Virus record (IMG/VR): IMGVR_UViG_3300036853_000446
Span: 248,001-312,000 of that record
Length of the DNA: 64,000 bases
Reading direction: 5' to 3' (one strand)
Below are positions 2,724 through 63,786 of the stretch, one piece after another. How positions within the stretch are numbered: the first letter of the stretch is position 1; every line of letters begins with the position of its first letter. The notes beneath the pieces are model-generated. The model saw only the letters and a program-made list of their open reading frames with translations. It was not told the DNA's origin and did no database searches. The position numbers and the translations under genes were made by a program.

Positions 2724-2980
2724 GTCGTGGTCTGGTGGGCTCCACGCAGCCTCTCAAATCTCTCTGCTCGCTGAGGAGGCAGCGCAACAGAACCAACGTC
2801 GTGGTCAGGTGGGCTCCACGCAGCCTCTCAAATGTCCGAGATCGCGACTTTAGGGTATGTAAATTCGTCGTGTCGTGGTCAGGTGGGCTCCACGCAGCCT
2901 CTCAAAGAAGGTGAACCCGTTGCTGTATGCCTTCGCGTCTACGAGTCGTGGTCAGGTGGGCTCCACGCAGCCTCTCAAAG
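2724..2980 (-). CRISPR. CRISPR array A1 (4 repeats, 3 spacers)
   Basis: 36-nt repeats GTCGTGGTCWGGTGGGCTCCACGCAGCCTCTCAAAK at 2724, 2798, 2872, 2945; spacers 37-38 nt; leader on the right. Confidence 0.95.
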
Positions 2981-3135
2981 ACGTAGCCTCAAAGTTCAGG
3001 CAATATAGGGCATTACGAGGCGGATTGCGAGAGGGTCGATCGTGCTCTGATTTGCCGTCGCGTAACCCTTCGATTTGCTTTGCATGGGCTGATCGAATCA
3101 CGTACTCGCTCGCCAAAGCCCCAAAGGGGCTCGGT
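2981..3135 (-). promoter_or_regulatory. conserved CRISPR leader copy 1
   Basis: Aligns with 12522-12665 and 18319-18472 (CAATATAGGGCATT, CGGATTGCGAG, GCGTAACCCTTCGATTTGCTTTGC, ATCGAATCAC, CGCTCGCC). Confidence 0.85.
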
Positions 3136-3184
3136 CGTCATTCGCAGGCGGACTCAGCGTGTGCTATGATTTATTAACTCAACC

Positions 3185-3745
3185 ATGGCCCAAACCGACA
3201 CCGTTGCCTCTCGGGTCGCCGCGCGTGTGCTCCACGCCATGGCCTATGATCGAAACGAATTCAGGAATAAGCTCGAAGAGCACATCGGTGGGGCTTACCT
3301 CGAGTTCTACAAGGCGCGGCTCGCAAGCAAGAACGGCCAAACCAAGTGGGTCAAGCACTGGCTCACGGAGGTGCGGCAGCTGCTCGATCGAAACCTCGTC
3401 GCCGCCATGCTGCACGAGATCCGCGGGTTCAAAGACCGGCGCAAGGTATATGAGCAGGTTTGTACCGCCATGAAGGCAAAGGACGCGGGCTACCGCCTGG
3501 CGGCTGAGAACACCGTGCTCCGTGACTACGGCCTTCGCAAGGTGCGCATGCTGCTAGACGATCAGGACACGACTAACTTTTGGGCCCTCGTCGAGCAGGC
3601 CGTCGACACCGGACTGGCAGGCAAGGCTGATGTCGAGCTGCAGGCACAACCCCAAGGCAAGCGCGATAAGGGCCGTGGCAAGCCGGAGAAGGGCGACAAC
3701 GGCCGTGGTAAGGGCGACAAGCGGAAGCGAGCGTCCGCTTCATGA
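3185..3745 (+). CDS. leader-adjacent hypothetical protein, paralog of 12708-13229
   Basis: Shared KLEEHIGGAYLEFYKARLA and EVRQLLDRNLV; basic C-terminal tail. Confidence 0.85.
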   Translation: MAQTDTVASRVAARVLHAMAYDRNEFRNKLEEHIGGAYLEFYKARLASKNGQTKWVKHWLTEVRQLLDRNLVAAMLHEIRGFKDRRKVYEQVCTAMKAKDAGYRLAAENTVLRDYGLRKVRMLLDDQDTTNFWALVEQAVDTGLAGKADVELQAQPQGKRDKGRGKPEKGDNGRGKGDKRKRASAS

Positions 3746-3816
3746 AGCTCAGTTGTCCTTCGACGGATCCTGGCGCGGCCGCGTCTTCTCCTTCGACGTT
3801 CGGCTCCTGTGAAGCC

Positions 3817-4299
3817 TCAGCTCGGGTTCGCGGCAAAGTCGAGAAACCCGGTAAACGGCAAGCGCGCATCCGCCGGCAGGCATTCGAACGTCCCGAGCGC
3901 TTCTCCCGCGTCGTTCCTCTTTAGGGTTGCCCTCCACGACACGTTGCCCAGCCCCCGATGCTCGCGCGTCAAGAAGGCAGCTTCTCCGTCTTCCGCGGCG
4001 AAATACACGGCGAGCGCGCGGTAGTCACGCGCCGTTTTTTTGAACAGGAATTGCAGATGGTTCGGCTCATCCCCGTCTCCGTCGACAATCAAGATCCCCC
4101 AAGGCGTCACGGGGAACGCAGGCCCACTCGGATTGTGTGTCGCGAGGCAAAAGAAGGTCGTCTTCACATCGCCATCCGACAGGAACGCCTCCCGAAGTCG
4201 AATCATCACCCACTCGTCCAGCTCCCGGATCACGGGTTCCGAGGACAGGTCGCGACCGTCAAAGGCCTCACGAAACGTAGACTTTGAAACCCCCGTCAT
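3817..4299 (-). CDS. hypothetical protein
   Basis: ORF track; start uncertain. Confidence 0.5.
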   Translation of the reverse strand: MTGVSKSTFREAFDGRDLSSEPVIRELDEWVMIRLREAFLSDGDVKTTFFCLATHNPSGPAFPVTPWGILIVDGDGDEPNHLQFLFKKTARDYRALAVYFAAEDGEAAFLTREHRGLGNVSWRATLKRNDAGEALGTFECLPADARLPFTGFLDFAANPS

Positions 4300-4438
4300 T
4301 GTGGTTACGGTTACCCCCAGGATCTGTCCGGAGTCAAGAGCAGTTCCTCTCAATGAGACCCAGCCTTCTTCAGGCCACTCAAAGGGGGACTTCCATCACC
4401 CAAGGCCAGCCAGATTCAAATTCCGAGTAGGGTCATTG

Positions 4439-4445
4439 CGGTGTA
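4439..4445 (+). promoter_or_regulatory. class-2 motif CGGTGTA
   Basis: 11 nt before ATG 4457. Confidence 0.55.
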
Positions 4446-4456
4446 GAATCGACCCA

Positions 4457-5652: not shown

Positions 5653-6198
5653 ATGCCCATTCTCATTGGCCACCTGCAAATCGATCCCGACCGGATGCAC
5701 ACCATCGCGGATGCGCAGAGGGTCGTGGGCTCCACGCCCGCCAACATCACGATCGTGGGCGACGTCGAGCACTATCCCGAAACGGTCCTCGAGTACCTTC
5801 TCGTTCGGGCGCTCCGTCCCATGGTCGCCCTCGGGGCCAAGGTCGAGCGCGTGCATTACTGCCGGGAATATTTCCCTCTCCACCTTCTGACGGATCACGC
5901 ATTGGAGGTTGCCCGTACTCCCCCCGAAATGACCACCACCGAGACGACGACGCCCGAAAAGACCTACACCCTCACGCTGACCGAGAACGAGATGGCTCGC
6001 GTCATCCACTCCTTGAGCGTCGACGCCGAGTCCCTACGCGCGCTGGCGGAGCCGTTCGACAGCTACGCTCTCCAGCTGGCAGAGGCTTCCGAGGCACTCA
6101 GGGACCGCCTTCGCGAAATCGTAAAGCCCTACCGTGACCCCGTCGCTCACGTCCCCACGGACGAGCGCTGGGCCGCCGAACGCCTCCACAACCTGTGA
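5653..6198 (+). CDS. hypothetical protein (internal promoter and in-frame ATG at 5929)
   Basis: ORF track; class-1 motif inside the ORF. Confidence 0.55.
   Translation: MPILIGHLQIDPDRMHTIADAQRVVGSTPANITIVGDVEHYPETVLEYLLVRALRPMVALGAKVERVHYCREYFPLHLLTDHALEVARTPPEMTTTETTTPEKTYTLTLTENEMARVIHSLSVDAESLRALAEPFDSYALQLAEASEALRDRLREIVKPYRDPVAHVPTDERWAAERLHNL
5892..5920 (+). promoter_or_regulatory. class-1 ECF-like promoter
   Basis: GGATCAC-N-CCCGTACTC, ATG 5929. Confidence 0.7.
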
Positions 6199-11730: not shown

Positions 11731-11773
11731 CCCGAGGGCCATTCGGGTGGGCTCCGATCGCTGGAATCGTCAG

Positions 11774-12521
11774 GTCGTGGTCTGGCCTCTTAACTCGAAA
11801 GACGAGCCGTCGTTGATGGGGACATGCGCTGAGTCGTGGTTGGGTGGGCTCCACGCAGCCTCTCAAATGGTATCGAGGAGGACGTCCTTCTCGCTGAACC
11901 GTCGTGGTCTGGTGGGCTCCACGTAGCCTCTCAAATCCACCAGGACGGACAAGCGTCCCGAGTAGTCGGCGTGTCGTGGTTGGGTGGGCTCCACGCAGCC
12001 TCTGAAATCGTCGGGCGAATCGTGTCTCATGCCGACAAGGTACTCGTCGTGGTCGGGTGGGCCCCACGCAGCCTCTCAAATCCGTTGAGAGAAGTAGTGA
12101 CCACTCGGTGTGGGATCTCGTCGTGGTCTGGTGGGCTCCACGCAGCCTCTCAAATTTTTCCTAAGGAGCGAGCCGGCGAACTATCCTCCCCGTCGTGGTC
12201 GGGTGGGCCCCACGCAGCCTCTCAAATCAAGATACCGCTGGTGCGAGACATTGGTGATACGTGGTCGTGGTTAGGTGGGCTCCACGCAGCTTCTCAAAAT
12301 CCATGACGGCGTCAGCGGTTGGTGAGGGTCATCCTCAAGTCGTGGTTGGGTGGGCTCCACGCAGCCTCTCAAATCAGCCGCTCAAATTACGCACCTCGCC
12401 ACGCTGGTTCCGTCGTGGTCAGGTGGGCTCCACGCAGCCTCTCAAATTCTTGTAATCGCCTGCGAGCCGTCCAGCCGCGGGTTGCGTCGTGGTCTGGTGG
12501 GCTCCACGCAGCCGCTCAAAT
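11774..12521 (-). CRISPR. CRISPR array A2 (10 repeats plus 1 internally deleted trailer repeat)
   Basis: Repeats at 11833, 11901, 11973, 12046, 12120, 12192, 12264, 12339, 12412, 12486; degenerate copy 11774-11794. Confidence 0.97.
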
Positions 12522-12665
12522 TTCGTAGCCTTAAAGTTCAGTCAATATAGGGCATTGCAACGCGGATTGCGAGGGGGTCGTTTATGAGCTGGTTTGCTCG
12601 CGCGTAACCCTTCGATTTGCTTTGCGTCGGTTGATCGAATCACCTTCCCGCTCGCCAAAGCCCCA
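12522..12665 (-). promoter_or_regulatory. conserved CRISPR leader copy 2
   Basis: Aligns with the other two leaders. Confidence 0.85.
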
Positions 12666-12707
12666 GAGTCGTCAGTCGCAGGTGTGCTACCCTTCGTTAA
12701 GGCCCCA

Positions 12708-13229
12708 ATGACCCAACCCGATACCGTTGTCGCTCGAGTGGCTGCGCGCGTGCTCCGCGCGATGGCTTATGACCGCAACGGCTTCAAGGACAAGCTCGAA
12801 GAACATATCGGCGGGGCCTATCTCGAGTTCTATAAGGCGCGGCTCGCGACCAAAAACAAGCAAACCGAGTGGGTTCAGCATTGGAACACGGAAGTGCGTC
12901 AGCTGCTCGACCGCAATTTGGTCGGTGCCATGCTGCACTCCATTCGTGGCTTTACGGACCGCCGAAAAGCATACGAGCAAGTTCGGACTATGCTTCGAGC
13001 AAGAGACGCCGGCTACCGGAGGGCGGCCGAAACCATCGTGCTCAAAGACTATGGCCTCCGGAAAGTCCGCATTCCTTTGGACGATCAGGATATGGAGGAT
13101 TTCTGGATCCTCGTTGACGAGGCCGCCGAGAACGGTCTAACGGCGGATCCTGATGCTGAAGTCAAGCCGCAAGGCAAGCGGCAAAAGGGAAAGCCCAACA
13201 AGCGGAAGCGAGCATTAGCCACGCCGTGA
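12708..13229 (+). CDS. leader-adjacent hypothetical protein, paralog of 3185-3745
   Basis: High visible identity to 3185-3745. Confidence 0.85.
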   Translation: MTQPDTVVARVAARVLRAMAYDRNGFKDKLEEHIGGAYLEFYKARLATKNKQTEWVQHWNTEVRQLLDRNLVGAMLHSIRGFTDRRKAYEQVRTMLRARDAGYRRAAETIVLKDYGLRKVRIPLDDQDMEDFWILVDEAAENGLTADPDAEVKPQGKRQKGKPNKRKRALATP

Positions 13230-13645: not shown

Positions 13646-14176
13646 ATGACGGATACCGAGTACGGCGCGCACACCAGGGCAAGATTGGCTGACATCGAGG
13701 CCCGCATCGAGGCTCTCGAGCTACGTGTCAGGGCCCAACCGCCCTCTCACGGCGCTCGCCAAAAGACCGCGACCTTTGACCCCGACGCTTGGCAAAAAAC
13801 CCTGCAGACCCCCGGGGGCGTCGCTGCGGTCGCTTCTGCCTTTGCGACGCACATCCGTGAGACCTTTGCTGCCCGCCGTCCTCGCGGTCTCGACCTCAAC
13901 GATTTGCACGAACGGACGAGCGTCACGAAGCTCGTCGAGGTTCTCGAGGCGTCCAGCGCTCGGCTTCGTGAATTCCAACCCGTCGGGGCGGCGGACGTCG
14001 ATCTCTCCCCGCTCGGCTCGCGCCCTTTTCGGACGGAATCCAAGGCGTCCACTTCCCGCTCCTGCTCGTTCTGCGGCAAGGCGCAGAACGAGGTGACCAA
14101 GCTCATCGCCGGTCCAACCGTTCTCATTTGCAATGAGTGCATCGACGTCTGCAACTCGATCGTCAGCGAGACGTGA
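13646..14176 (+). CDS. protein with C-terminal ClpX C4-type zinc finger
   Basis: [30 protein letters not shown]. Confidence 0.85.
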
Positions 14177-17550: not shown

Positions 17551-18318
17551 ATCGTGGTCTGGTAAGGCTCCATACAGCCTCGCGAATAAGTTCACAGCTT
17601 GAAAGGTCAAGGACAGATCGGGTTGTCGTGGTTGGGTGGGCTCCACGCAGCCTCTCAAATCGGTCGCCTTTGACACGGGCATACTCATATCATGCTGCCA
17701 GTCGTGGTTGGGTGGGCTCCACGCAGCCTCTCAAATCCGAGCACCACCGCGTCGCGACGCGGAAGGTAGTGGGGTCGTGGTTGGGTGGGCTCCACGCAGC
17801 CTCTCAAATCGCAAGCCAAGGATGCACGTGCTACGGACGACCGCGTGTCGTGGTTGGGTGGGCTCCACGCAGCCTCTCAAATCAAGCTGGCGGAAGCTGC
17901 CGTTGACCACTCTTCTATCGTCGTGGTCGGGTGGGCTCCACGCAGCCTCTCAAATCTGAACCTCGAGTGGATGCTTAATGGACCGCTCATCGTCGTGGTC
18001 GGGTGGGCTCCACGCAGCCTCTCAAATCCAATGCGCGACGAGGCTCGTCACCTGCGTCGGATTGTCGTGGTTGGGTGGGCTCCACGCAGCCTCTCAAATT
18101 CGCCTCGAAGCAGTCGGCACTCGTATCGGATGCGCACGTCGTGGTCGGGTGGGCTCCACGCAGCCTCTCAAATTCTGCGCCTGCAGGTGCGGGCTACCGA
18201 TCACAGTGGCGTCGTGGTCGGGTGGGCTCCACGCAGCCTCTCAAATCCGTCAAGTCCTCGGCCCCGAGACGGAGGTTGTGCTGTCGTGGTCGGGTGGGCT
18301 CCACGCAGCCTCTCAAAT
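17551..18318 (-). CRISPR. CRISPR array A3 (10 repeats plus 1 degenerate trailer repeat)
   Basis: Repeats at 17625, 17701, 17774, 17847, 17920, 17992, 18064, 18138, 18211, 18283; degenerate copy 17551-17587. Confidence 0.97.
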
Positions 18319-18472
18319 CTGTAGCCATAAAGTCCAGGCAATATAGGGCATTGCAAGGCGGATTGCGAGAGGGTCATTTACGAGCTGGTTTGTTCGCGCG
18401 TAACCCTTCGATTTGCTTTGCGTGAACTATCGAATCACCTTCGCGCTCGCCGAAGCCCAGAGGGGCTTCGGC
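18319..18472 (-). promoter_or_regulatory. conserved CRISPR leader copy 3 with distal hairpin
   Basis: Aligns with other leaders; perfect GCCGAAGCCC-AGAG-GGGCTTCGGC at 18449-18472. Confidence 0.85.
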
Positions 18473-18826
18473 CGTCCTGAGGTCCGATCACGACAACCCT
18501 ACCGTCTGTTTCGTCACGCCAACCAAGCCGAGAAGTCCGGCGAGACGGATCGCCTTGTAACAGCGTTCCTCGACCAATCCCGTCTCGCGGCCGAGCCTCG
18601 CGGCAAAAACATCGATGTCCACGATCCCGAGCCGGTTCGAGAGCTGAGCGACCAACAGAACCAATGAGACCGCGCTCCCGGGCATCTCGGTTCCGTGCAT
18701 CGTAAGCTCCGGAAACCATGGCACCGTGTGGAGAGGGCTCTCGGACATGGCCCAATCTTATCGTCTTTTTCCACGCGAGGGCGCATCAAAAGCGCGGTAA
18801 CCTCCACGCCCATGGGAGAAATAAAG

Positions 18827-35092: not shown

Positions 35093-35123
35093 ATTCCTCG
35101 AACCGTTCGAACCCTTCGAGGGT

Positions 35124-36331: not shown

Positions 36332-36341
36332 CGTGAGCATC

Positions 36342-36348
36342 TACACCG
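36342..36348 (-). promoter_or_regulatory. class-2 motif CGGTGTA
   Basis: 10 nt before ATG 36331. Confidence 0.55.
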
Positions 36349-42159: not shown

Positions 42160-43602
42160 ATGGCAAAGAGGAAGTCAAAGACGACGAGTGTCCAGCCCGG
42201 TGAAGTGCTGAAGGGGTTTCGCGTCAAACTCAGACCGACCCAGGAGGATCTGCGTTACCTATCGACGGCTCAAGTCGAGCTGATGACGATGTGGAACATC
42301 CTCGTGATAACGTGGAAGACGCACGTCGATTACTGCGTTCGGCATTGCGAGGACCTCGGGCTCATCGGACCCGTACCGCCACGACCGACCTCGGACCAAG
42401 ACACGAACGTGCCCGAAGAGATCGCCGAATGGGAGGAGTACGCGGCACTCTGCCGTGAACGCCGCCGAAGCGCTCGCGAGCAGTGTAAGACCGTCGAGGG
42501 TCTGACACGGCGCGACTGGGCGAATCGAGCCCTCGATTACCACCAACTTGATCTCACGGAGAAGGCTCGAGAGCAGACGCAGATCGATTACCGCGTCCTG
42601 CGGTCCGCCGTGAAGGGCGTCACGACGGCCCATATGGCCCAGGCCGTCATCGAGACTTACAAGGCGTCATTGCAGAAAGGGCGGCCGCCACCGAAGCTCA
42701 AGAGACGCCCGCTCGAGATGCCTCTCTTGCTTCGCAGCGGTAAGGATTTGCTTACGCTTTCAGCGAACCACTCCACCCGAACGACGGCGTCCGGGAAGAA
42801 GCGGCTCACCGGCTCCCACCACTGCATCGTCAAGTTTGGCCCGCTCAAGATCGGGGGACGATTCAACCGCCCGCCGTCGGGTCCCTTCCTCCAGGGCATT
42901 TCGATCGGGCTCGAGAAGGACGGCTGGTACGCCTCCGCGAAGGTCCGGACCCTACCTGAGGATCTGCCGAAGCCAACGAAGGAAATCATCGCGATCAACC
43001 CGGGACTCGAATGCCTCTACGCCGACAATGAGGGTTATGTGATCGAGAACCCACGGGGCAACGCTTACTCCCTCCGGATGCGCGAGATGAGCGATTGGAT
43101 CGACGACGCCGAAACCCAGTGGGACGAAGCCCACCGTCGCAACCATCAAGCTCGATATGCCGAGCGTTTCGCGCGGCACACGGAGGACCTCATCTACAGC
43201 CGCATCCTCCCGAAGCTCGCCGATTACGAGACGATTCTCATCGGCAAGGCCGGCAAAACCGCCGCTCAAGGTCGACAAAACCGCATCAGTAAGAACGACG
43301 AGGGCGGCTACGTTTCGGCCATGAGCTTGATGCAGCAGCTCATCATCCAGAGGTATGGCCTCTATGACCCCGACGAGAATCCGACGGGGCGAGTGCGAGT
43401 GCTGGAGTCCATGGGAATTTCCCGGAGGTGCTCGCGTTGCGGAACCGAGCACGCAACCCGTTATCAACGCAACAATTTACGCCGGTATGACCAACAGACC
43501 GATTGCCAGGAACCCTCGTGTCGGCTCAAGATACACGTCGATGTTGGCGCCGCTCGCAACCTGCTTTCCAACTATCGGGATTTGCAGGCGGCAGCAGAAT
43601 GA
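42160..43602 (+). CDS. compact type V (TnpB/Cas12-like) effector with inactivated RuvC, 480 aa
   Basis: TnpB-like GFRVKLRPT, PKLKRR, GWYAS; RuvC-I IIAINPG (D->N), RuvC-II TILIGK (E->G), Zn finger CSRC...CQEPSC, RuvC-III HVDVGAARNL; RBS GAGGGG; array 2 nt downstream. Confidence 0.88.
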   Translation: MAKRKSKTTSVQPGEVLKGFRVKLRPTQEDLRYLSTAQVELMTMWNILVITWKTHVDYCVRHCEDLGLIGPVPPRPTSDQDTNVPEEIAEWEEYAALCRERRRSAREQCKTVEGLTRRDWANRALDYHQLDLTEKAREQTQIDYRVLRSAVKGVTTAHMAQAVIETYKASLQKGRPPPKLKRRPLEMPLLLRSGKDLLTLSANHSTRTTASGKKRLTGSHHCIVKFGPLKIGGRFNRPPSGPFLQGISIGLEKDGWYASAKVRTLPEDLPKPTKEIIAINPGLECLYADNEGYVIENPRGNAYSLRMREMSDWIDDAETQWDEAHRRNHQARYAERFARHTEDLIYSRILPKLADYETILIGKAGKTAAQGRQNRISKNDEGGYVSAMSLMQQLIIQRYGLYDPDENPTGRVRVLESMGISRRCSRCGTEHATRYQRNNLRRYDQQTDCQEPSCRLKIHVDVGAARNLLSNYRDLQAAAE

Positions 43603-43604: not shown

Positions 43605-44869
43605 CTCAGAACGGCAGCGTGGTGCCTACCCTCCCACGACGAGGAGTTCGGTGGCCGCGCGCGATGATGTGCAAGACCTCAGAACGGCAGCGTGGTGCCT
43701 ACCCTCCCACGACACGAGGTCGGAAAGAGTCTCAATCTCGGCAATCTCACGCTCAGAACGGCAGCGTGGTGCCTACCCTCCCACGACGACCTGCGGAAGA
43801 AGGGCCTTCGCCGATCTACTTGGGCTCAGAACGGCAGCGTGGTGCCTACCCTCCCACGACGAAGTGACGTCTACCAATTGGGCTTGGTCCTCTATCACTC
43901 AGAACGGCAGCGTGGTGCCTACCCTCCCACGACTTATGGGGATGAACCGAGAACCAGCCTCGATCGATGTCTCAGAACGGCAGCGTGGTGCCTACCCTTC
44001 CACGATAGCCGCGTCCTCCAAACTGCCGAATCGATTCCGAAACTCAGAACGGCAGCGTGGTGCCTACCCTCCCACGACGGCATCTCCACTCGTTCCCTCG
44101 TCCTCCGGGTATGGACCTCAGAACGGCAGCGTGGTGCCTACCCTCCCACGACTACGGCTGGCGGTCCCCCGCCAAACGAGGTTGGCGTGCTCAGAACGGC
44201 AGCGTGGTGCCTACCCTCCCACGACGAAACATCACGCGCCTGGGCAACAGCATCAGCGTCGCCATCTCAGAACGGCAGCGTGGTGCCTACCCTCCCACGA
44301 CCAACGACATGACCCCGTGGAACCTGTGAGCTTGCTCGGCGCTCCTCGGAACGGCAGCGTGGTGCCTACCCTCCCACGACGGAAAGACTCGTTCGTGATC
44401 CCGAGTCGACCCCCATGCTCAGAACGGCAGCGTGGTGCCTACCCTTCCACGACGAGGAGTTCGGTGGCCGCGATGGTGATGCGCAAGCCCTCAGCATGGC
44501 AGCGTGGTGCCTACCCCTCCACGACTTCGAGCAACACGTCAACGCGCGTATTGGCTCGTTCAGCCTCAGAGTGGCAGCGCGGTGCCTACCCTTCCGCGAC
44601 ACGTCCCCCAGTTAGCGGAAAGCCTCGGTACTGGTCTCAGAATGGCAGCGTGGTGCCTACCCTTCCACGACCACATCCGTGGATAGAGAGTCCCCCTCCG
44701 GAGTCAACCTCAGAACGGCAGCGTGGTGCCTACCCTTCCACGACTTTCCGATCTCGTTAAAGTAGATGCGGACTTATGGCAGCGTGGTGCCTACCCTTCC
44801 ACGACGTGCACGGGTCTTCTCAAAGAAAGACGCCTCAGAACGGCAGCGTGGTGCCTACCATTCCACGAC
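43605..44869 (+). CRISPR. CRISPR array B (18 repeats, 17 spacers)
   Basis: 36-nt CTCAGAACGGCAGCGTGGTGCCTACCCTYCCACGAC at 43605, 43678, 43752, 43825, 43898, 43971, 44043, 44117, 44190, 44266, 44345, 44418, 44490, 44565, 44636, 44709, ~44770 (5'-degenerate), 44834; decay increases away from the gene. Confidence 0.98.
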
Positions 44870-45975: not shown

Positions 45976-46160
45976 GGTTGAGAGGCTGCGTGGAGCCCAC
46001 CCAACTACGACGGTATCATTCGGCTTTTTATCAGGTCCCCCGATCCGGAGTAACTTGCGAGGCTGCGTGGAGCCCACCCAACTACGATATGCCCGTGCCG
46101 ACGTGGCGCTTCCAAGAAAGGTACATTTGAGAGGCTGCGTGGAGCCCATCACACCACGAC
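45976..46160 (+). CRISPR. CRISPR mini-array A4 (3 family-A repeats)
   Basis: Repeats at 45976, 46053, 46125 in the ATTTGAGAGG...CCACGAC orientation. Confidence 0.9.
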
Positions 46161-46250: not shown

Positions 46251-46286
46251 GATGAAATGGCAGCGTGGTGCCTACCCTTCCACGAC
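46251..46286 (+). repeat. orphan family-B CRISPR repeat
   Basis: GATGAAATGGCAGCGTGGTGCCTACCCTTCCACGAC, 3' 28 nt match repeat B. Confidence 0.85.
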
Positions 46287-49340: not shown

Positions 49341-51872
49341 ATGCTCAGAGAGTCAGGGGCAGCTCGCGCGAGGGACTGTGCACCCTCAAGTGCCGTCCAC
49401 CGCACCGCTAAAACAGAGCCCGTTGTCATTCAGTGCTTTGAGGCACCGTGCGGGACACGACCACATAACCTGCCGAAACGAAAAGGAAAGGATAAAGCGT
49501 ACGTCCCGAACAGGTCGCAGCGTGCCAGCTACACAGCCCTGGATGGTCAACTCCTTTGTATACTTACCAAGCCAACGGGTAGCGGAAAAACCATTGACAT
49601 CCTAACACTTGCACTGAGCGACCTCGCAAAGCCCGACGGACGAAAACAGGTCGTCATCTACTCGATGACGGACATCGGTCCTGGCTTCGGTGGCCCAGGA
49701 AGGCAGGAGGGCCCCATCACGATCGACGTTCCGGGGCATGGGCTCATGACCTGGACCCCGATTTGTGCCTCTGAACAGACCGTCGAAACGATCATCAACT
49801 TCTTGCGACGGCGCCCCGCCAAGGATCGCAGTCAGCGCATGCTCATCTGCACCCACCTTGCTCTGGTGCTGGCTCACGAGGAAATGCTGCGACGTGGTTA
49901 TAAGCGCCCCTTCAAAAAAACCTCACTCTACATAGACGAGTGCCACCACATCTGCTGGGACATGTCGAGTGGCACAGCCGTCACGAACGGCCTCGGTAAG
50001 ATCGTTTCCCATTACTACGAGTGCCGGCCCGGCAAGCTCGTGCTTGCCACTGCCACGTTCATGCGCCCTGACGGGCAGGTCATCCCGCCCGAGTATCGCG
50101 ACAAATTCGCCGCCTACGAGCTTCCGATGCATGAGCACCTTGCATCGATGCCGCACCTGAAGGGGATACGCTTCCACTTCGTGATGGCGTCCGCTGTCGA
50201 GGCTGTTGAGACGATCATCGGGGGAGACCCTCATCGCCCGACGCTAATGTGGTTGCCAAACAACGTGATCGGCAGCGCCAAGGCGCCTTATGTCAAGCGC
50301 TTGGTCGACGCTACACCTGACTGTATTCGCGACCGAATTTACGACTTCACGGATGACGAGCAGGTGTCCGAGATTCGAGAGCGCTTTCACCGGCTCAAAC
50401 TGGACCCTGTCGAGTACCCGTGCCTTGGGATTGCCCTGCGTCGGTTGCTCGAGGGAGTTGACTCACCTATGGCGAGCCGCGGGATCATCCTCGGGCTTCG
50501 CGGTATCCGGGACATCATCCAGATGGTCGGGCGCTTTATCCGCGACTTAGAAGGCAAGCCGTATGCTGATATCTACATCGTCGTCGACCCTCCCTCCGAA
50601 GACGAAGCAGACGTTGTCGAGCACCTCGAGGACAATCTCTCCGCCATCTTCATTGCGATGATCGCGGGGTGGCAGTACGGCCCGGCCCGCAAGCCCCGGA
50701 ACAAGGCGGAGCGGGATCTCGCCGAGAAGGTGGGTAAGATTCTCAGCAACCCGGAAGCAACCACCGTAGTGCTAAACGCAATCGCGAGCGCGGTCGCCCG
50801 TCACGCTGACGGTGAGCCGGAGCAACTCAGCGCCGGCATGCACGAATCCATGCGTCGACTGGCAGAAGAGCGACCGGACCTCGCGGACATGAAGGACCCT
50901 GCGGTTCGGTCACGACTCGTCGAGGACGTCGACGAAAGAATGGCAGGACCTGCTGCCGAAGCCGAGAAGAAGCTGAAATACAAGATCCCGGGGCTCAAGG
51001 GAGCGCGAGATCTGACTGGGCTCAAGTTGACGGCTGAGCAAGGTCTTGCTCGCAACATCACGGTCCTCGGCTTCACGTGCGGCGCGCGCAGCATGAAGAT
51101 GATGAGGGAGAGTTTAGCGTCGGATACAATTGAACTCGTATACGAAGATGTGCGAGAAGCCGCCCTCCGATGGTGGGAAGCAACCGGTAAGTTCCCCCAC
51201 GCGGGAATGGTGGGCGTAGTGGTTGATATCGGAGGCCGTCAGCATTGCTGGCGTCAGGTCAACGGCTGGCTGAGCCGGCACTGCAGCTCGTCCTTGGGCA
51301 AACTCAGAATCGAGTGCACGGGCAACCTCGGCAGGGGTCTGATTCCGTATGATCTAGTCGCAGAGGAGGCATCTGAATACCGGGCCCGGACCGGTGAGTG
51401 GCCTCGAATTAAATCGGGACCCCTCGCTCGATTGCGTACTACGTGGGAGACACTATACCAAAAGTTCATTCGGGAAGGCACTAGCCTGGAAGACTTTTTG
51501 GAATCCAGGTTCGGGCCCTTGCGACTGAGACACTTCGACACCTATGACGAATGGCGAAAACACGCACTGGATGCAAACGTCGGTTGTCATACGGACTATC
51601 AGAGAGCGCGCGGTGAGTCTCGCATTGACAGCCGATTCCCCTCAAATCCGCGAGATTATTACGGTGCCGGGTGGAAGGGGTGGCCAAAAGACCGCAAGGT
51701 CTCACGTGGTGAAAGCCATGGATGCGCAAAGTTGTCCGATGCATCGATCAAGCGAATGCGAAGGCGATTTAAGCAGCGTTTCACAAAGCGCGCCGTCGCC
51801 GAAGAGTTTGGTGTCTCCATCTCAACCGTCAAGCTCATCAAGTCTGGGCGCATTTGGGCACACGTGAAGTGA
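49341..51872 (+). CDS. SF2 helicase with C-terminal DNA-binding modules
   Basis: KPTGSGKT, IDECHH, ATAT, LLEGVD, IQMVGRFIR; CGGTGTA at 49307-49313. Confidence 0.85.
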   Translation: MLRESGAARARDCAPSSAVHRTAKTEPVVIQCFEAPCGTRPHNLPKRKGKDKAYVPNRSQRASYTALDGQLLCILTKPTGSGKTIDILTLALSDLAKPDGRKQVVIYSMTDIGPGFGGPGRQEGPITIDVPGHGLMTWTPICASEQTVETIINFLRRRPAKDRSQRMLICTHLALVLAHEEMLRRGYKRPFKKTSLYIDECHHICWDMSSGTAVTNGLGKIVSHYYECRPGKLVLATATFMRPDGQVIPPEYRDKFAAYELPMHEHLASMPHLKGIRFHFVMASAVEAVETIIGGDPHRPTLMWLPNNVIGSAKAPYVKRLVDATPDCIRDRIYDFTDDEQVSEIRERFHRLKLDPVEYPCLGIALRRLLEGVDSPMASRGIILGLRGIRDIIQMVGRFIRDLEGKPYADIYIVVDPPSEDEADVVEHLEDNLSAIFIAMIAGWQYGPARKPRNKAERDLAEKVGKILSNPEATTVVLNAIASAVARHADGEPEQLSAGMHESMRRLAEERPDLADMKDPAVRSRLVEDVDERMAGPAAEAEKKLKYKIPGLKGARDLTGLKLTAEQGLARNITVLGFTCGARSMKMMRESLASDTIELVYEDVREAALRWWEATGKFPHAGMVGVVVDIGGRQHCWRQVNGWLSRHCSSSLGKLRIECTGNLGRGLIPYDLVAEEASEYRARTGEWPRIKSGPLARLRTTWETLYQKFIREGTSLEDFLESRFGPLRLRHFDTYDEWRKHALDANVGCHTDYQRARGESRIDSRFPSNPRDYYGAGWKGWPKDRKVSRGESHGCAKLSDASIKRMRRRFKQRFTKRAVAEEFGVSISTVKLIKSGRIWAHVK

Positions 51873-52297
51873 GACAACGCCAGGCGAAGTCCAATGGAAC
51901 GAGCGTTCCCACTCGCGTCCTGACCTGGTACCTCGCCACGAGCGCGAAAGGTGGCACCGTCGACGACTGCTCTCGCTCTCTGGGGCTCGCGAATCAGTCG
52001 GTGTCGGGGGCGGTGACACGGCTCACGAACGCCGGCAAGCTGTCAAAGACCGACCTCACGCGCAGCACTCGACTGAAGCGCCCGGCAGCCGTCTACGTCC
52101 ACAGCAAATTCGCAAAGGGCCCGTCCAATGCGAACAAGGCCGAAGCTTCCCGAGCTGAAGCCGCTCGGGAAGCAAGAGTCCTCCAACTCTTCCGGCAGTA
52201 TGTGGAGGCTCGGAAGAAGGCAGGGAAGGACGAGCGGGCGATCCAGCGGGCGCTCATGCGGTTAATGAAAGGGCTGGCGGTCGAGGCGGAGCGTTAA
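51869..52297 (+). CDS. winged-HTH protein (same pattern as 46750-47292)
   Basis: GTVDDCSRSLGLANQSVSGAVTRLTNAGKL...TRSTR...AAVY. Confidence 0.7.
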   Translation: MRQRQAKSNGTSVPTRVLTWYLATSAKGGTVDDCSRSLGLANQSVSGAVTRLTNAGKLSKTDLTRSTRLKRPAAVYVHSKFAKGPSNANKAEASRAEAAREARVLQLFRQYVEARKKAGKDERAIQRALMRLMKGLAVEAER

Positions 52298-57075: not shown

Positions 57076-58206
57076 TCAATGCGGCACGACGCTGTCATCG
57101 TCAAGCTCGTCATCGGCAGCAGCTCCGACGCTACCGTGATCGCTGGCGTATCGAGCGCTCAACTGCTCGAGGTCGAGCTGGGTGGGGGGCATCGCGTAGC
57201 CGATCGTCTTGAGTCGGTTCAAATACTTCTTCAGCGTCTCTTGTTCGATGTCACTTTGCGACGGGCGCGACAAGAGCTGCCACTCGACGGTCGGGGAGTC
57301 ATCGGGAGACGTTCTTCGGGTCGTGTTTGGATTGGCGAGGGCGCACACGCCCGCGACGAGGCGCGCGAAAAGAACCATGATGCCTTCGCTAGCGTCGCCC
57401 TCAGGGATGATCGGTTTCATCAAGTGCTGTCGGCGGACGAGGCCCAGCTGCTCTGTCAGCAGCGATTCACCCTGGAGAAAGCCGCGGTCGCCGGACATCC
57501 CGTACAAGCCCCAGCGCTCGCGGGGGCGCTCTGCCATAAGGCGCTCGACCTTCGCGAAGGCGCTTCGCACATCGCTCGGGACTTCGTCCTTCAGGGACGG
57601 CAGGACCGGCGTTTCGTACCGGTGGAGCATCACCTCGGTGTACTTGACGCCGTCCCATTCGATGTTGAGCCCCTCTGGCAGCCGAATCAGGAATGCATCC
57701 CACGGTGGCACGAGCCCGTCGACGAACTCGGGCGGGTAGCTCGTAAGCATCATCGCGGCGGCCAGCCCAGCATCCAACGAGATCGCCGGACACCTGAACG
57801 ATTGCCAGCGACTCTCCCGGTACAAGGTCTGAATTGTGCTGAGGGTGCGATCGAAGTCTGCCGGCCCCCTCTCGTTGAATATCATGCCGATCGCGCTTTT
57901 GGCGAAGCACGGGGGGAGCAGTTCCCCGAACTGCTTCAGCTTGAGGATGAAGTCGCCCGAATCAGCCGTGACGGGGAGCGCCGTGCCGACGAGAGTTCCC
58001 AGCAGGCGCCACGGAATGTCGTAGTAAGGGCTCTCTGACTCGCGCTGTTGAAGGGCATCCTCCTCGATGGCGCCGAGTAGACGCTCGATCTTCTTTATGT
58101 GGAGGTCCGACGATTCGCGGCTCGCACCAGCTGGCCTTCTCTGCTGCTGGCGAAGCTGTTTTCTCTGCTGCCTGCGGGCAGACTTGATTTTGGACTTGTG
58201 CGACAA
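57076..58206 (-). CDS. hypothetical protein
   Basis: 376-aa ORF, basic N-terminus. Confidence 0.65.
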   Translation of the reverse strand: MSHKSKIKSARRQQRKQLRQQQRRPAGASRESSDLHIKKIERLLGAIEEDALQQRESESPYYDIPWRLLGTLVGTALPVTADSGDFILKLKQFGELLPPCFAKSAIGMIFNERGPADFDRTLSTIQTLYRESRWQSFRCPAISLDAGLAAAMMLTSYPPEFVDGLVPPWDAFLIRLPEGLNIEWDGVKYTEVMLHRYETPVLPSLKDEVPSDVRSAFAKVERLMAERPRERWGLYGMSGDRGFLQGESLLTEQLGLVRRQHLMKPIIPEGDASEGIMVLFARLVAGVCALANPNTTRRTSPDDSPTVEWQLLSRPSQSDIEQETLKKYLNRLKTIGYAMPPTQLDLEQLSARYASDHGSVGAAADDELDDDSVVPH

Positions 58207-58681: not shown

Positions 58682-58846
58682 ATGGCAGCACGTCGGACCC
58701 GTTCACCATCACAAGCGCCATCAGAGCCGAATGCCGAGACGGTGCGCGTAACCTGTTACCAGGTCGACGTTTCGCGGGAACAGCAACAAGCCATTCATCA
58801 GCAGCTTCTCGAATTACTCGCTGAAATTTATCGGAACCTTAAATGA
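58682..58846 (+). CDS. 54-aa protein coupled to the recombinase
   Basis: MAARRTRS...QLLELLAEIYRNLK; ATGA overlap with 58843; not in ORF track. Confidence 0.55.
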   Translation: MAARRTRSPSQAPSEPNAETVRVTCYQVDVSREQQQAIHQQLLELLAEIYRNLK

Positions 58847-60420
58847 AGGCTGCAATCTACGCCCGTGTGTCGTCCGACCAGCAAAGGGAGCGCCACACCA
58901 TCGGCTCGCAGCTCACCGAGCTACCCAAGTACGCAAAAAGCCAAGGCTGGACGGTTGTCCGACTCTACCAAGACGACGGCAAGTCGGGAGAGAGTATCGA
59001 CGGGCGTCCAGAGTTTCAGGCACTTCTCGAGGACGCCGAGAAGAAACTCTTTGAAATTGTCCTCGTCATCGACCTCGACCGCATCACTCGCTCGAAACGT
59101 GATCAGGAGGGGGCTTTCATCTACGACACGTTTCGGTTGCATGGCATCAAGCTGGCGACTCCGAGCAACGGTCTCATCGATCTCGAGAATGAGGACCAGG
59201 ACCTTCAGATCGGTATCCTTCAGGCTTTCGCAAAGTTTGAGAAGCGGAAATTTCTCCGCCGAACGATGCGAGGTAAGTATCAGGCCGCTAAAGACGGGAA
59301 GCGGTATGGTTCGATCGATCCCTACGGGTATCGGTGGGTTATCGACCCGGTCTTGAAGGCGGGGGGCTCGTACCAGATCGTCGAGGACGAAGCTAAAGTC
59401 GTTCGTCGCATCTACAGCCTCGCTCTCGAAGGTCATGGCGTGGCAATGATCGCTTGGATGTTAGAGAATGAGGGTATTCGGACGCGACCACGCGCACCCC
59501 GTGGCACCGAAGGCAAGATCGCCGGTCCTTGGTGGCGCTCGTCTGTGCTGAAGGTTCTGCATTCCGTGACGTACACGGGATCGTTCAAAGTCCTCAAGGG
59601 GAAGGAGAGCGAACCCCTCTCGATCAAGGTCCCGCCTATTGTCACCCGGGCAACCTGGGACGCAGCCCAGAGGGCGCTCACACAGCGCAAGATGTCCTCG
59701 GGCGCTCCGGCACGACACGACCACCTCTTACGCGGATGCGCCTCGTGCGGCGTCTGCGGGTACAAGATGTGGATCGTTACCCCTAGGGCCGGCAAAAGCG
59801 CTGCCTACTACAGATGCTGCACGACCAACGGATGGCGCGGCATGGGCCTCAAGGGCCCATGTGGCAACAAGCACCACCGAGTGGACCGCACGGACCATGA
59901 GGTCCAGACGAAGGTGCTCGAGATTCTGCAAAATCCAAAGCTGCTAGCTCAAGCGTGTTCGTTGCAGGGTGAACCTACGGACGGGGTCGACTGGAAAGGT
60001 CAGCTCCGAGGTCTCGAGCAAAAGCTTGCGATACTGGATGAGGCCGCGTCCGACGCGATGGTCCGTCAGCGTCGGGGAATCATTCCTTCCGCGGTCGCCG
60101 AGAAGGAACTCCTGAACATTGCCCGCGAGCGAAAGCTCGTTGACCGAAACGTCAAACTAGCGCGTGTCAGATCCGGTAAAGCCTCAGCTGAACGCAGCCT
60201 GCGCCAAAATATCGAGGATCAAGCAAAGGCCCTAAGCAGCGGACTCGATCAAGCGGACTTTGAAACGCGACGGAAGATTATCACCCTGCTCCTTCCGAGA
60301 GAGCTGGGCTGCGGTGTCGTCCTGCACCGGGACGGTGGTATCGACATCAAATGGGTCCTGCCACTGCCCGGCGACATCGAGCACGTGGAACTACGCACCG
60401 CCCTCAAAAAAGTTGGGTGA
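58843..60420 (+). CDS. large serine recombinase (integrase)
   Basis: AAIYARVSS, DDGKSG, RPEFQALL, DLDRITR, PYGY recombinase domain, CGVC...YYRC...C Zn ribbon, coiled coil. Confidence 0.95.
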   Translation: MKAAIYARVSSDQQRERHTIGSQLTELPKYAKSQGWTVVRLYQDDGKSGESIDGRPEFQALLEDAEKKLFEIVLVIDLDRITRSKRDQEGAFIYDTFRLHGIKLATPSNGLIDLENEDQDLQIGILQAFAKFEKRKFLRRTMRGKYQAAKDGKRYGSIDPYGYRWVIDPVLKAGGSYQIVEDEAKVVRRIYSLALEGHGVAMIAWMLENEGIRTRPRAPRGTEGKIAGPWWRSSVLKVLHSVTYTGSFKVLKGKESEPLSIKVPPIVTRATWDAAQRALTQRKMSSGAPARHDHLLRGCASCGVCGYKMWIVTPRAGKSAAYYRCCTTNGWRGMGLKGPCGNKHHRVDRTDHEVQTKVLEILQNPKLLAQACSLQGEPTDGVDWKGQLRGLEQKLAILDEAASDAMVRQRRGIIPSAVAEKELLNIARERKLVDRNVKLARVRSGKASAERSLRQNIEDQAKALSSGLDQADFETRRKIITLLLPRELGCGVVLHRDGGIDIKWVLPLPGDIEHVELRTALKKVG

Positions 60421-61070: not shown

Positions 61071-61127
61071 AGTCCCGGACATCTCTACACACGGGCGCGA
61101 ACGTCGGGGCCCTCCCCAATGAGGTCG

Positions 61128-61134: not shown

Positions 61135-61143
61135 TGAGCAGAG

Positions 61144-61953
61144 ATGCAGGTAGTATCGCGGGGAAAGTATGAAGGAGTACCTTGGGAGGAATTCTTCGAG
61201 GACTTCGACTTCGGCGTAGAAGAGCATGCAGAGGACTACCTCGATGTTCTATTGGCGCCGCTGCGCGAAAGTGGCAAGTACGTGCGGCGTGAGATGCCGC
61301 AGGCCGATGCGTTCTCCGAATGGTTCGGCCTCAATACTCCGGCTATGCTCGAGGCGAAGACGAGAGCCGGCATGGTCACCTCGATCTATCGGCAGATCGG
61401 CATTGGCTGTGAGCGCCTCATGCGGAGAGTTATCCAAGACAATCTTGGCGTTCCCGCGTCGAGCTGTTCATGGGCGCACGTCGTCGAGGGACAAAATCGC
61501 TCACTGGATGCCCGAATACCGCTCGAATCAATTACGGCGAGGCGCAACGAATTTGAAGGCTGGATCTGCGAGGCCTCGGCACATCTTGGATGCGGTCCGA
61601 TGAATGCCGGGGCAGTGTTTGAGGTACGACAAGGCCACAAGAGCGGTGATTCGAAGAGGCAGGTAGGGGATCGCCTCAATGCCGCAAAGGCACTATCGGA
61701 GGGCTACCTTCCCGTCATGTTAGTAGTCTCGACGCAAATTCCAGAGGCGACACGAAGACGATACATCAAGGATGGTTGGCTAGTGTTGACAGGCAGGTTT
61801 GGCGGTGGCGCACTCAGGAGCAGCTACGCCTTCTTCGCTGACGTCCTAGGTTTTGACCTTGCCGGCTTCCTGGAAGACCACCAAGTGCACTTGAAAGAGT
61901 TGGTCCAATCCACTCTCAGTCGGGGCATGACGCCGCACTCGATGCAACCGTAG
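61144..61953 (+). CDS. putative type II restriction endonuclease-like (PD-(D/E)XK) protein
   Basis: SIYRQIGIGCE...SLDARI...AVFEVRQGHKSGDSKRQ. Confidence 0.65.
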   Translation: MQVVSRGKYEGVPWEEFFEDFDFGVEEHAEDYLDVLLAPLRESGKYVRREMPQADAFSEWFGLNTPAMLEAKTRAGMVTSIYRQIGIGCERLMRRVIQDNLGVPASSCSWAHVVEGQNRSLDARIPLESITARRNEFEGWICEASAHLGCGPMNAGAVFEVRQGHKSGDSKRQVGDRLNAAKALSEGYLPVMLVVSTQIPEATRRRYIKDGWLVLTGRFGGGALRSSYAFFADVLGFDLAGFLEDHQVHLKELVQSTLSRGMTPHSMQP

Positions 61954-62025
61954 AAGCCCAAGCGCGCGAACATGCGGTGCCCTTCGGGTGAGAGAGGGCA
62001 AGCAGCAGTCCGACAAGCGTTCACG

Positions 62026-62574
62026 CTAAGGGCGCGTCGGAACATCGTGCTCGGGTAGCACGCGACAGAGCCGGTGGTCCCGCACGAGGAGCCGCCAGCG
62101 GGGCTTTCCAAACTTGGCGCCGCGTCCCTTGGCCCGCCACAACTCGTTGCCGTTGTCTTGCGTCCGCGAGAACGACGCCGTCCTCAGGACCTCCGACAGC
62201 TCTTGCCGGGCCTTTGCCAAGCCGGCTGGGTTGTCCTCGCCACACGAGAGCAAACAGAAATCGCGGACCACGCTGACCGACAGCTTGCCGGGCTCGCATT
62301 CGATGTAGCGCTCGGGAGCCGGTACTTGAGCGACGTTGGCCCTCAACGTTTCAGCCCGCGCGCGGTGTCTCTCGGTGGTTACGATCTCGACCTTCCACGT
62401 GTCGCGGGCGTCCGTACCGCTGCCCGTGAGCGTGAGGCGATCCGTGACGTAACCCCGCTCCGCACAGCGCGTCGCGATCGCTTCGAGACTCGCCGTCACC
62501 TCCGACCAGAAACGCCCGTCGGAGGTGACACGCTGTGCCGCGTCCGGCTCGGTGACGCGGAGAGTCGACTTCAC
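62026..62574 (-). CDS. hypothetical protein
   Basis: GTGA overlap with upstream gene. Confidence 0.55.
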   Translation of the reverse strand: MKSTLRVTEPDAAQRVTSDGRFWSEVTASLEAIATRCAERGYVTDRLTLTGSGTDARDTWKVEIVTTERHRARAETLRANVAQVPAPERYIECEPGKLSVSVVRDFCLLSCGEDNPAGLAKARQELSEVLRTASFSRTQDNGNELWRAKGRGAKFGKPRWRLLVRDHRLCRVLPEHDVPTRP

Positions 62575-63092
62575 GCCGCCGTCGAGGCGCTGAGAAACTG
62601 CGCCAGAAGCGCACGCAACACCGGTTCCGCCTCCTGCAGGTCCTCGAGTGTGGGGGTCATCCGCTCCCATTCGATCGTAATATCACGGTCGCGGTCGCCG
62701 GGGTGGGCGGCATATTGGCCGACGCGGCCGGTGCCCGATTCATCGGAGCTGTACCAGAAACCATTGCGTCCGAGGTAGCAGCCACCGTCGGTCGTCTGCC
62801 GGCGCCAGGTGTGATAGAAGCCCGTCTCCGTCGGCACGTCCTCGGTTTCTCGACCGCGGACACGGACGACCGAAGGTCCGCGGCCATGCCGCTCTTCGCT
62901 CGGTGGGTAACTGTTGTCGAAATGCCCCGCCTCATCCGTGATGCTCGTGCTGGTGCCCTTCCAGACGTCGGGCTGCCGACGCGCCAGGATCTTGCCCATT
63001 GCGTTACACAAGCGCAGCAGCCGGGTCTGTTCCTCAGCGTCGGTTTGCTCGATTTTGGCGGCCAGTTCTTCGAGCTGTTCAATCGTTATCAT
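62571..63092 (-). CDS. hypothetical protein
   Basis: RBS GGGAGAG; class-1 motif upstream. Confidence 0.65.
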   Translation of the reverse strand: MITIEQLEELAAKIEQTDAEEQTRLLRLCNAMGKILARRQPDVWKGTSTSITDEAGHFDNSYPPSEERHGRGPSVVRVRGRETEDVPTETGFYHTWRRQTTDGGCYLGRNGFWYSSDESGTGRVGQYAAHPGDRDRDITIEWERMTPTLEDLQEAEPVLRALLAQFLSASTAA

Positions 63093-63138
63093 GATCTCTC
63101 CCAAGGGTGAGCGCTTGTTGACGTGCGCTTGCCCTAGA

Positions 63139-63167
63139 GAGTACGGGCCAGGGTTCAGGTTTGATCC
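63139..63167 (-). promoter_or_regulatory. class-1 ECF-like promoter
   Basis: GGATCAAA-N-CCCGTACTC. Confidence 0.75.
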
Positions 63168-63636
63168 GTTGGGTCGTAACGCCCTCTTGTGGGACGTTCC
63201 CCGAATAACCTACGAGGCGTTCTTCGCCGTGCACTCGATACAGCCAAAGAACCCAGGATGGGTCTTCGGCGAGTTGAGCCAGCTTCGCGGAGTCAACGAA
63301 GCGATCGCAGTGAGCGCAGCGCCGGAGACGAGTCCGTCCTTTGGCCTCCGCGGGATGCGGAAAGCCCCGCCGGTCTCGAGTCTTGTGCCCGGGGCACTCG
63401 GGGCAGCAGGCGTCGGGTCCATGGTGCGGGCAGGTCACGGCAGCTTTTACACCGCCAGGGCGCGGGCACGAGCGGTGTCGTTCCGCTGAGATTTCGCAGG
63501 GGCGTTCGCAATTTCCGACACAGCAGGTGCAGCCTCACTTCAGCGCCTAAATTCATGACCTTTCGGGTCGACAAACTGACTGCCAAAAATGCTCGTCTCG
63601 GTATACAATTCCCTTTGAAATCGATGACGAAAAACC

Positions 63637-63786
63637 ATTTCAGAGGCTGCGTGGAGCCCGCCCAACCACGACTCATTCAATCGGCAGAACTTGGTTCAAA
63701 TATGAAGGGCTGCGTGGAGCCCACCCAACCACGACAAGATTCACGACACGCTGTGAGAGGCCGCGTGGAGCCCACCCAACCACGAC
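63637..63786 (+). CRISPR. CRISPR mini-array A5 (3 family-A repeats, short spacers)
   Basis: Repeats at 63637, 63700, ~63751; spacers 27 and 15-18 nt; AT-rich upstream with TACAAT at 63604-63609. Confidence 0.9.

Follow-up and report, generated by a model that had tools for sequence, protein, structure and literature searches.

Dispersed CRISPR arrays of two related repeat types on a mobile element and a predicted nuclease-dead TnpB/Cas12-like effector that may read both

The 64-kb stretch of DNA analyzed here (referred to as the window) represents positions 248001-312000 of IMG/VR contig IMGVR_UViG_3300036853_000446, a mobile element of 407,634 bp; the readable DNA consisted of this window and approximately 6 kb of the contig, and the remaining 343 kb were covered by motif scans only. 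The window carries five CRISPR arrays that share one repeat type (family A; arrays A1 to A5), an array with a second, related repeat type (family B), and one gene encoding a TnpB/Cas12-like protein, hereafter the effector. An earlier note on this DNA had reported the five family-A arrays with a total of 30 repeats plus two degenerate ones and with spacers that are almost all different, and a recount agrees on both points. A 35-nucleotide (nt) family-A pattern with ≤3 mismatches yielded 28 matches in the window as compared to 0 expected from 100 shuffles, and the remaining copies were recovered with a fuzzy search and with a core search at looser settings. Spacers in A1 to A3 are 36-40 nt long and all distinct; the exceptions to the all-different pattern are a pair of related spacers in family B and a 15-nt spacer of A5, which duplicates the terminal flank of A1. 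The family-A arrays are genuine CRISPR arrays. The 15-nt spacer, which is the second in A5 (63736-63750), is an exact copy of the DNA beyond the final A1 repeat (2709-2723), suggesting recombination between arrays. A 13-nt exact match to the repeat A core, in reverse sense and inside a coding region at 5725-5737 (+), is probably due to chance.

Screening of the 82 predicted window proteins with PADLOC, Pfam, and PHROGs identified the effector as the sole cas-like protein, and no Cas1, Cas2, Cas4, Cas6, or Tn7 genes were found among these proteins. Cas1, Cas2, and Cas4 were also not found in the gene tables of related loci; an adaptation module (Cas1 and Cas2, with or without Cas4), which is optional in many type V-U, V-M, and V-K loci, is thus absent from the window and from these loci. 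The previous designation of the family-A arrays as "five cas-less arrays" holds for A1, A2, A3, and A5, which have no cas gene beside them, but overstates the case. A4 and a solo B-like repeat are located 1.1-1.4 kb beyond the end of the family-B array on the effector's strand, and A4 therefore belongs to the effector locus; in addition, both A4 and A5 are short and degenerate.

Profile matches to the effector were weak throughout. A Cas12f1-like TNB domain was detected by Pfam (E 2.6e-4), and PADLOC matched the effector to Cas12u2 and Cas12u3 with E values of merely approximately 1e-4. Scores against NCBIfam models were 24 bits for guided_TnpB (24-62 for clade members; cut-off 100), 14-22 bits for C2c8 (V-U2; cut-off 350), and 15 bits for Cas12f2 (cut-off 450); none of the curated NCBIfam cut-offs for the V-F (Cas12f), V-U2 (C2c8), and V-E subtype models was reached. 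An AlphaFold2 model built from 41 sequences (predicted local distance difference test score 88.7; predicted template modeling score 0.80) gave Cas12f, TnpB, and Cas12m as the best Foldseek matches in the PDB, with E values of 1e-13 to 1e-9. Full-length fold matches included Cas12f, TnpB, 9jfs (deposited as Cas12p-TrxA), Cas12m2, and dCas12f, with template modeling (TM) scores of 0.45-0.50 and 9-15% identity. The effector is thus predicted, from this model, to have the TnpB/Cas12 fold with WED, REC, split RuvC, and zinc-ribbon TNB domains, and a CRISPR array lies directly beside its gene, as in type V CRISPR-Cas systems.

We identified 13 homologues with 52-74% identity to the effector, all of them on metagenome contigs; in an exhaustive profile search, 50 cluster representatives reached E<1e-30, and these grade into 1453 TnpB-like proteins at E<0.001. 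Proteins of the effector family are approximately 435-520 amino acids (aa) long. In nine clade members (at least 39% identity to the effector), the RuvC-I Asp is replaced by Asn and the RuvC-II Glu is lost (replaced by Gly, Ser, Ala, or Asp across the clade) while the RuvC-III Asp is kept; the clade hence lacks the intact RuvC D-E-D triad of type V effectors. By contrast, approximately 30 sister proteins (≤32% identity) retain D/E/D. This pattern of clade-wide catalytic loss next to intact sisters points to a conserved, presumably nuclease-dead, array-associated offshoot of TnpB-like proteins. Two of the active sisters were looked up and are located inside phage-like gene strings without arrays. 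Integrases, a type IV secretion set with topoisomerase, RusA, or lysozyme were found on the contigs that encode clade members, which are thus mobile elements.

The position of arrays relative to effector genes also allowed for assignment of the transcribed strand. In seven independent loci (the window's family-B array as well as L007, L008, L131, L132, L133, and L134), array and effector gene share a strand and the array starts 2-10 nt past the stop codon; in three others (L102, L128, and L130) it starts approximately 270 nt past the stop. Most clade members end in ...LQ(R/A)AAE, with the first repeat 2-10 nt further on (43570-43602 in the window; L007, L008, L132, and L133). The sense of the arrays in the seven loci assigns A1, A2, and A3 to the minus strand and the other two, A4 and A5, to the plus strand (Table 1); the repeat strand given in the earlier note (GTCGTGG...CTCTCAAAT) was inverted, with the transcribed strand represented by its reverse complement. 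Location of the degenerate repeats of A2, A3, and the family-B array distal to the leader or gene agrees with the assigned orientation. In this orientation, a flank of approximately 170 nt that is conserved to the right of A1, A2, and A3 becomes a leader, with the motif CTCGCAA..GCC approximately 52 nt upstream of the first repeat, followed by TATATT. The motif CTCGCAAYYYGCC is common to the A1 to A3 leaders and to the DNA between effector and array in L102 and L128, at equal distance from the first repeat, and it is also present in L130. A sigma-70 promoter in the leader was considered and rejected, as a promoter scan makes no call, and the element is retained merely as a conserved motif. Two paralogous genes at 3185-3745 (+) and 12594-13229 (+), with 66% identity over 186 aa and no Pfam family, diverge from the A1 and A2 leaders, respectively; leader, array, and neighboring gene thus appear to have been duplicated as one module.

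Table 1. Arrays, leaders, and effector gene in the window
Feature	Position	Strand	Description
A1 array	2724-2980	-	Four family-A repeats; three spacers of 37-38 nt
A1 leader	2981-3184	-	Conserved with A2 and A3 leaders; divergent paralogous gene from 3185 (+)
A2 array	11737-12521	-	10 repeats (11833-12521), degenerate distal copy at 11774, and remnant at approximately 11743
A2 leader	12522-12640	-	Same motif; paralogue of the 3185 gene then on the plus strand
A3 array	17551-18318	-	10 near-identical repeats (17625-18318) and degenerate distal copy at 17551
A3 leader	18319-18500	-	Same motif as A1 and A2 leaders
Effector gene	42160-43602	+	Sole effector; 480-aa TnpB/Cas12-like protein; RuvC-I D to N, RuvC-II E lost, RuvC-III D kept; mosaic of two clades
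Family-B array	43605-44869	+	18 repeats, beginning 2 nt after effector stop; uniform near the gene, degenerate distally
A4 array	45976-46160	+	Three degenerate repeats of family A; same strand as the effector gene; 1.1 kb past the family-B array
Solo B-like repeat	46251-46286	+	90 nt after A4
A5 array	63637-63786	+	Three degenerate repeats; short spacers of 27 and 15 nt

In the sense of the effector gene, repeat A reads ATTTGAGA-GGCT-GCGTGG-AGCC-CACCCGA-CCACG-AC and repeat B reads CTCAGAAC-GGCA-GCGTGG-TGCC-TACCCTC-CCACG-AC. Across loci, the repeat is built in the same way: an 8-nt flank leads into a hairpin with a 4-bp stem and a 6-nt loop, a 7-nt linker then connects this hairpin to a 5-nt tail, and AC ends the repeat. 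The last five loop bases pair with the 5-nt tail to form an H-type pseudoknot (helix 2). Repeats A and B share this covarying pseudoknot; helix 2 and the terminal AC are identical between the two, while the flank, one compensated stem pair, and three linker bases differ. The difference in the 5' 8 nt and the linker had been described previously, correctly for the orientation of the effector, but that description omitted the swapped closing pair of the stem (U-A to A-U). Five loop/tail pairs were found, all of them complementary (GCGUGG/CCACG, GUGCAG/CUGCA, GUGCGG/CCGCG, GCGCAG/CUGCG, and UCACGA/UCGUG), and compensatory changes were present at 7 of 9 pairs over 22 distinct repeats, including all 5 pairs of helix 2; in slid controls, pairing falls to 30-52%. 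The rows for this comparison were gathered by a scan that requires pairing, and the 100% pairing figure is therefore built in, but the first repeat past the stop codon, picked by position alone, fits the pseudoknot in every locus. The background of the pseudoknot motif in the window is 48 per 128,000 positions. Among the 24 repeats of A1 to A3, no changes were found at 240 helix-2 positions and stem changes were only wobble-preserving or single, while variation is free in the 5' flank and at two linker positions; the lone family-B repeat with an altered helix 2 has both sides altered. The pseudoknot emerged from cross-locus comparison alone, with single-sequence minimum free energy folding of the repeats being ambiguous. 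Rfam gave no family at gathering thresholds and no CRISPR-DR match for the repeats.

A structure-aware pattern for both repeat families was scanned against IMG/VR, GTDB species genomes, and JGI metagenomes. In IMG/VR, this contig was the only one with a match, and all matches were within the window, while the JGI metagenomes yielded arrays on two contigs of one sample (L102 and L073). L102 carries a P0003-type effector with 68% identity to the window effector, followed after approximately 270 nt by an array whose repeat equals repeat A over the 28 nt at the 3' end. The same arrangement, with a 68%-identical effector, is found in L128, and L073 appears to be the distal end of the L102 array. 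The presence of A repeats beside orthologous effectors, together with the shared leader motif, therefore identifies repeat A as a cognate repeat of this effector family, and the earlier description of family A as a sister of the effector-linked repeat that feeds a type V-like dead effector is supported by its location next to the closest orthologues in L102 and L128 and by the pseudoknot that it shares with family B. A ParB-like gene at 34097-35092 (+), with its counterpart at 37-1023 of L130, is located with its neighbors in a region (34114-36348) that is syntenic, at approximately 70% nt identity, with L130, the contig that encodes P0002; relatives with A-type effector loci therefore share the backbone of this element.

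These scans also bear on the idea that repeat A copies a host type I or type III repeat processed by Cas6 and that the arrays exploit or jam a host CRISPR system, similar to phage mini-arrays and RNA anti-CRISPRs. There is a precedent in mini-arrays of phages and plasmids with repeats matching those of the host (PMC11656645). However, the 185,579 species genomes (one per species) gave only 61 single, chance-like matches with ≤28/36 identity to A or B and no array of this family, with the reservation that the true host may fall outside this collection; in addition, the same repeat is located directly downstream of orthologous effectors and matches no Rfam CRISPR-DR. A Cas6-type host origin of repeat A, which had been proposed as the observation that would overturn a type V assignment, was thus rejected, and we regard mimicry of host repeats as very improbable.

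With regard to the question of which protein reads the family-A arrays, the earlier note had put forward two alternatives, namely that the single effector loads guides of both families in trans or that a paralogous effector outside the window provides a second, orthogonal channel. Trans-loading is favored by mixed repeats in a related locus, by the mosaic structure of the effector, and by the searches described below, in which no paralogue was found in the window or on the contig. Residues 1-210 of the effector are 68-75% identical to the A-linked P0002/P0003 clade as compared to 23-61% to P0004/P0006, while residues 361-480 are 80-85% identical to P0004, P0006, P0007, and P0008 as compared to 56-75% to P0002/P0003. 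The effector is thus a mosaic of A-linked and B-linked clades, with the N-terminal 210 aa derived from the A-linked clade. In L008, the array beside P0006 mixes stems and linkers of both types; repeats that combine A-like stems and B-like flanks come first, and B-like ones with 96% identity to B come next. Together with the location of A4 and a B-like repeat only 90 nt apart, these mixed repeats and the effector mosaic suggest that A and B repeats are not orthogonal. As to history, an ancestor may have carried A-type arrays and a P0003-like gene, with recombination later bringing in a new 3' end and the abutting family-B array.

With two orthogonal channels, the window effector would read family B only, and the family-A arrays would depend on another effector of the P0003 type whose gene lies beyond the window, either elsewhere on the replicon or on a related, co-resident element. 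Consistent with such an arrangement, repeat A in relatives adjoins a distinct orthologue (P0003 or P0002) at a distance of approximately 270 nt and with the same leader, A and B are consistently distinct in the flank, the linker, and one stem pair, and only 64 kb plus approximately 6 kb of the 407-kb contig were read. Searches for a second effector, on the other hand, were negative; tblastn with all 14 family proteins detected no second copy or pseudogene in the window outside of the known gene, and an IMG/VR scan of the 407-kb contig with two family-conserved peptide motifs, which are also present in P0002 and P0003, returned the known gene alone. The search of the replicon for paralogues that had been called for hence gave a single locus, within the reach of motifs that would miss distant TnpB-like proteins. 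All contig matches to the repeat family are also inside the window, and the site that is syntenic with the effector site of relatives has no effector here. In these relatives, the effector follows genes for 847-aa and 147-aa proteins, and a pair of genes in the window at 49341-52297 (+), encoding an 843-aa protein (weak DEAD and PbeA-like matches; C-terminal helix-turn-helix [HTH]) and a 147-aa protein, is syntenic with the pair that immediately precedes the effector in L128 (6237-9205) and L129; no effector follows the window pair, and the window effector is instead located 5.7 kb upstream of it. This gene pair was also considered as a conserved accessory and rejected, being unrelated to the large protein near P0012 and without a PDB relative. 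Overall, we consider a second, dedicated effector for family A unlikely.

The same mosaic could alternatively indicate that the family-A arrays are relics, left over from an ancestral P0003-like locus in which the effector was replaced or recombined, and that they are maybe transcribed but functionless. The degenerate state and short length of A4 and A5, the A1 junction copied in A5, the lack of adaptation genes in the window, and the lack of any spacer target found would be in line with decay. Against this stand the complete conservation of helix 2 and the restricted stem changes in the 24 A1 to A3 repeats described above, as well as the uniform spacer lengths and the three conserved leader copies of these arrays, and we judge it quite unlikely that the arrays are non-functional remnants.

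We thus consider it on balance probable, from sequence comparisons, that the single effector of the window loads CRISPR RNAs (crRNAs) of both families in trans; one effector serving several arrays is ordinary CRISPR architecture. We infer a pathway, from promoter and crRNA processing to DNA binding without cleavage and a biological role, in which minus-strand transcription of A1, A2, and A3 would start from a conserved leader belonging to each array. In the crRNA, the repeat would form the 5' handle, with the pseudoknot ahead of the spacer, and the effector would load both A and B crRNAs in trans. The effector-crRNA complex would then bind matching DNA without cutting it, and the outcome may be silencing of competing elements or chosen genes, similar to CRISPR interference (CRISPRi).

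Several points weigh against this scheme. The case for cross-loading is based on similarity, and the mixed repeats in L008 are located partly in a degenerate, possibly non-functional stretch of the array. Coverage of the other 343 kb of the contig by two peptide motifs means that a distant TnpB-like protein would escape detection. The match of the leader to the hexamers of sigma-70 promoters is weak, at only 3/6 plus 5/6. Cas12f/TnpB-class proteins of approximately 480 aa usually require a long scaffold or a trans-activating crRNA (tracrRNA), and a k-mer search as well as a duplex-energy scan found no convincing tracrRNA or anti-repeat partner, where a weak partner could escape; the best anti-repeat duplex (57169-57208) falls in a G-rich coding stretch and was rejected as unconvincing. 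Finally, no protospacer was found in the searches made, and neither a target nor a protospacer adjacent motif was derived. These searches gave no spacer matches in GenBank phages or PLSDB plasmids and no self-matches in the window or any fetched locus, and exact seeds of four spacers in IMG/VR gave one 19-nt match (L136) that diverges at once and is at approximately chance level. The two related family-B spacers (43641-43677 and 44454-44489) share their first 19 nt, followed by substitutions and a 1-nt indel; this hints that they may represent two alleles of one protospacer, possibly in a non-coding target.

Inactivation of RuvC is a documented, recurrent event in type V systems; approximately 50 independent transitions from TnpB to type V have been inferred, several V-U groups have altered catalytic sites, and silencing in the absence of cleavage, demonstrated for V-C and V-M, is also predicted for V-O and V-P (PMC12669027, PMC10691335). 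Plasmid-borne V-M and type IV systems are thought to serve in competition between plasmids (PMC11656645), and TldR and dCas12f-sigma-E represent dead TnpB/Cas12f derivatives with functions in regulation (bioRxiv 10.1101/2023.11.30.569447; PMC13472631). Like the type V-M (Cas12m) systems of plasmids and prophages (PMC10442227, PMC11013384, PMC11656645), the system described here is carried by a mobile element, pairs one compact effector of Cas12 type with a CRISPR array, has no evident tracrRNA, and is predicted to bind DNA in a crRNA-guided manner without cleavage, for silencing or competition between elements. The relation to Cas12m in sequence is limited to a common fold, however (Foldseek TM 0.43-0.50, 9-11% identity), and no Cas12m chain was found in a PDB profile search with the effector at E≤1. 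The effector is also approximately 120 aa shorter, and Cas12m keeps a non-canonical RuvC site while RuvC-I and RuvC-II of the effector are replaced.

TldR proteins (bioRxiv 10.1101/2023.11.30.569447) resemble the effector in that they are TnpB-sized, RuvC-dead, derived from active TnpB-like relatives, and predicted to be RNA-guided DNA binders. However, TldR uses one omega-RNA-like guide to a host gene and no CRISPR array, whereas loci of the effector family are on mobile elements and have arrays of 3-18 repeats with varied spacers; a single repeat was found only in L133. There (2489-2560), the dead-clade homologue P0016 (39% identical) is followed by one repeat and one guide-length stretch without an array, an arrangement that, by analogy, resembles the fixed single guide of TldR-type regulators. 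Sigma-E-recruiting dead Cas12f (PMC13472631), V-U24, V-U43, and V-U44 (PMC10691335), and V-O and V-P (PMC12669027) likewise represent independent cases in which a miniature type V or TnpB protein has lost RuvC activity but retained its RNA guidance; unlike for sigma-E-recruiting dead Cas12f, no sigma factor or other conserved partner was found beside the effector in the loci examined. With regard to type V-K CRISPR-associated transposons (Cas12k), no Tn7 family (tnsB, tnsC, tniQ) was found among the window open reading frames (Pfam, PADLOC, PHROGs) or related loci. Orphan and multi-array loci, including the scattered arrays of huge phages (PMC7162821), share with this element the presence of distant arrays with the repeat type of one cas locus by which they are presumably served in trans. 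They differ in that here two repeat dialects coexist with a mosaic, nuclease-dead effector and that each orphan array keeps the leader type that is located between effector and array in relatives.

Among the other genes of the window, 61144-61953 (+) encodes a type II restriction endonuclease (PADLOC REase_II, E 8.6e-46), and control-protein/HTH and weak methyltransferase matches are found elsewhere in the window. A large serine recombinase with Resolvase, Recombinase, and zinc-ribbon domains (PHROG integrase, E 1.6e-89) is encoded at 58843-60420 (+). An open reading frame at 13646-14176 (+) carries a ClpX-type C4 zinc finger (Pfam, E 1.3e-16), and its DNA shares 70-79% identity with the 5' ends of many clpX genes, both plasmid-borne and chromosomal.

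The effector clade falls outside of every subtype tested, where the numbered V-U groups, V-O, and V-P were compared through the text of the respective papers. We tentatively raise the possibility, which at present appears doubtful, that this clade represents an undescribed type V subtype, with nuclease-dead, crRNA-only DNA binders of 435-520 aa for which the 36-nt repeat serves as a self-contained pseudoknot handle, and with a mosaic effector that reads two dialects from six arrays (approximately 44 guides) over 61 kb. If true, the element would encode a multiplexed CRISPRi network, and its effector would be among the smallest tracrRNA-free programmable DNA binders. That miniature type V and TnpB proteins recurrently lose RuvC activity is recognized (V-M, V-K, TldR, and dCas12f-sigma-E), and the multi-array layout by itself is ordinary and does not make this a new kind of system. 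What the locus adds is a compact clade that keeps real CRISPR arrays, on phage- and plasmid-like elements, and that is apparently tracrRNA-independent. Should the predicted DNA binding of the 480-aa protein with its 28-nt pseudoknot handle hold true, this would represent a very small natural CRISPRi module, and the two repeat dialects together with the recombinant effector would provide a natural test of the repeat variation that such an effector tolerates.

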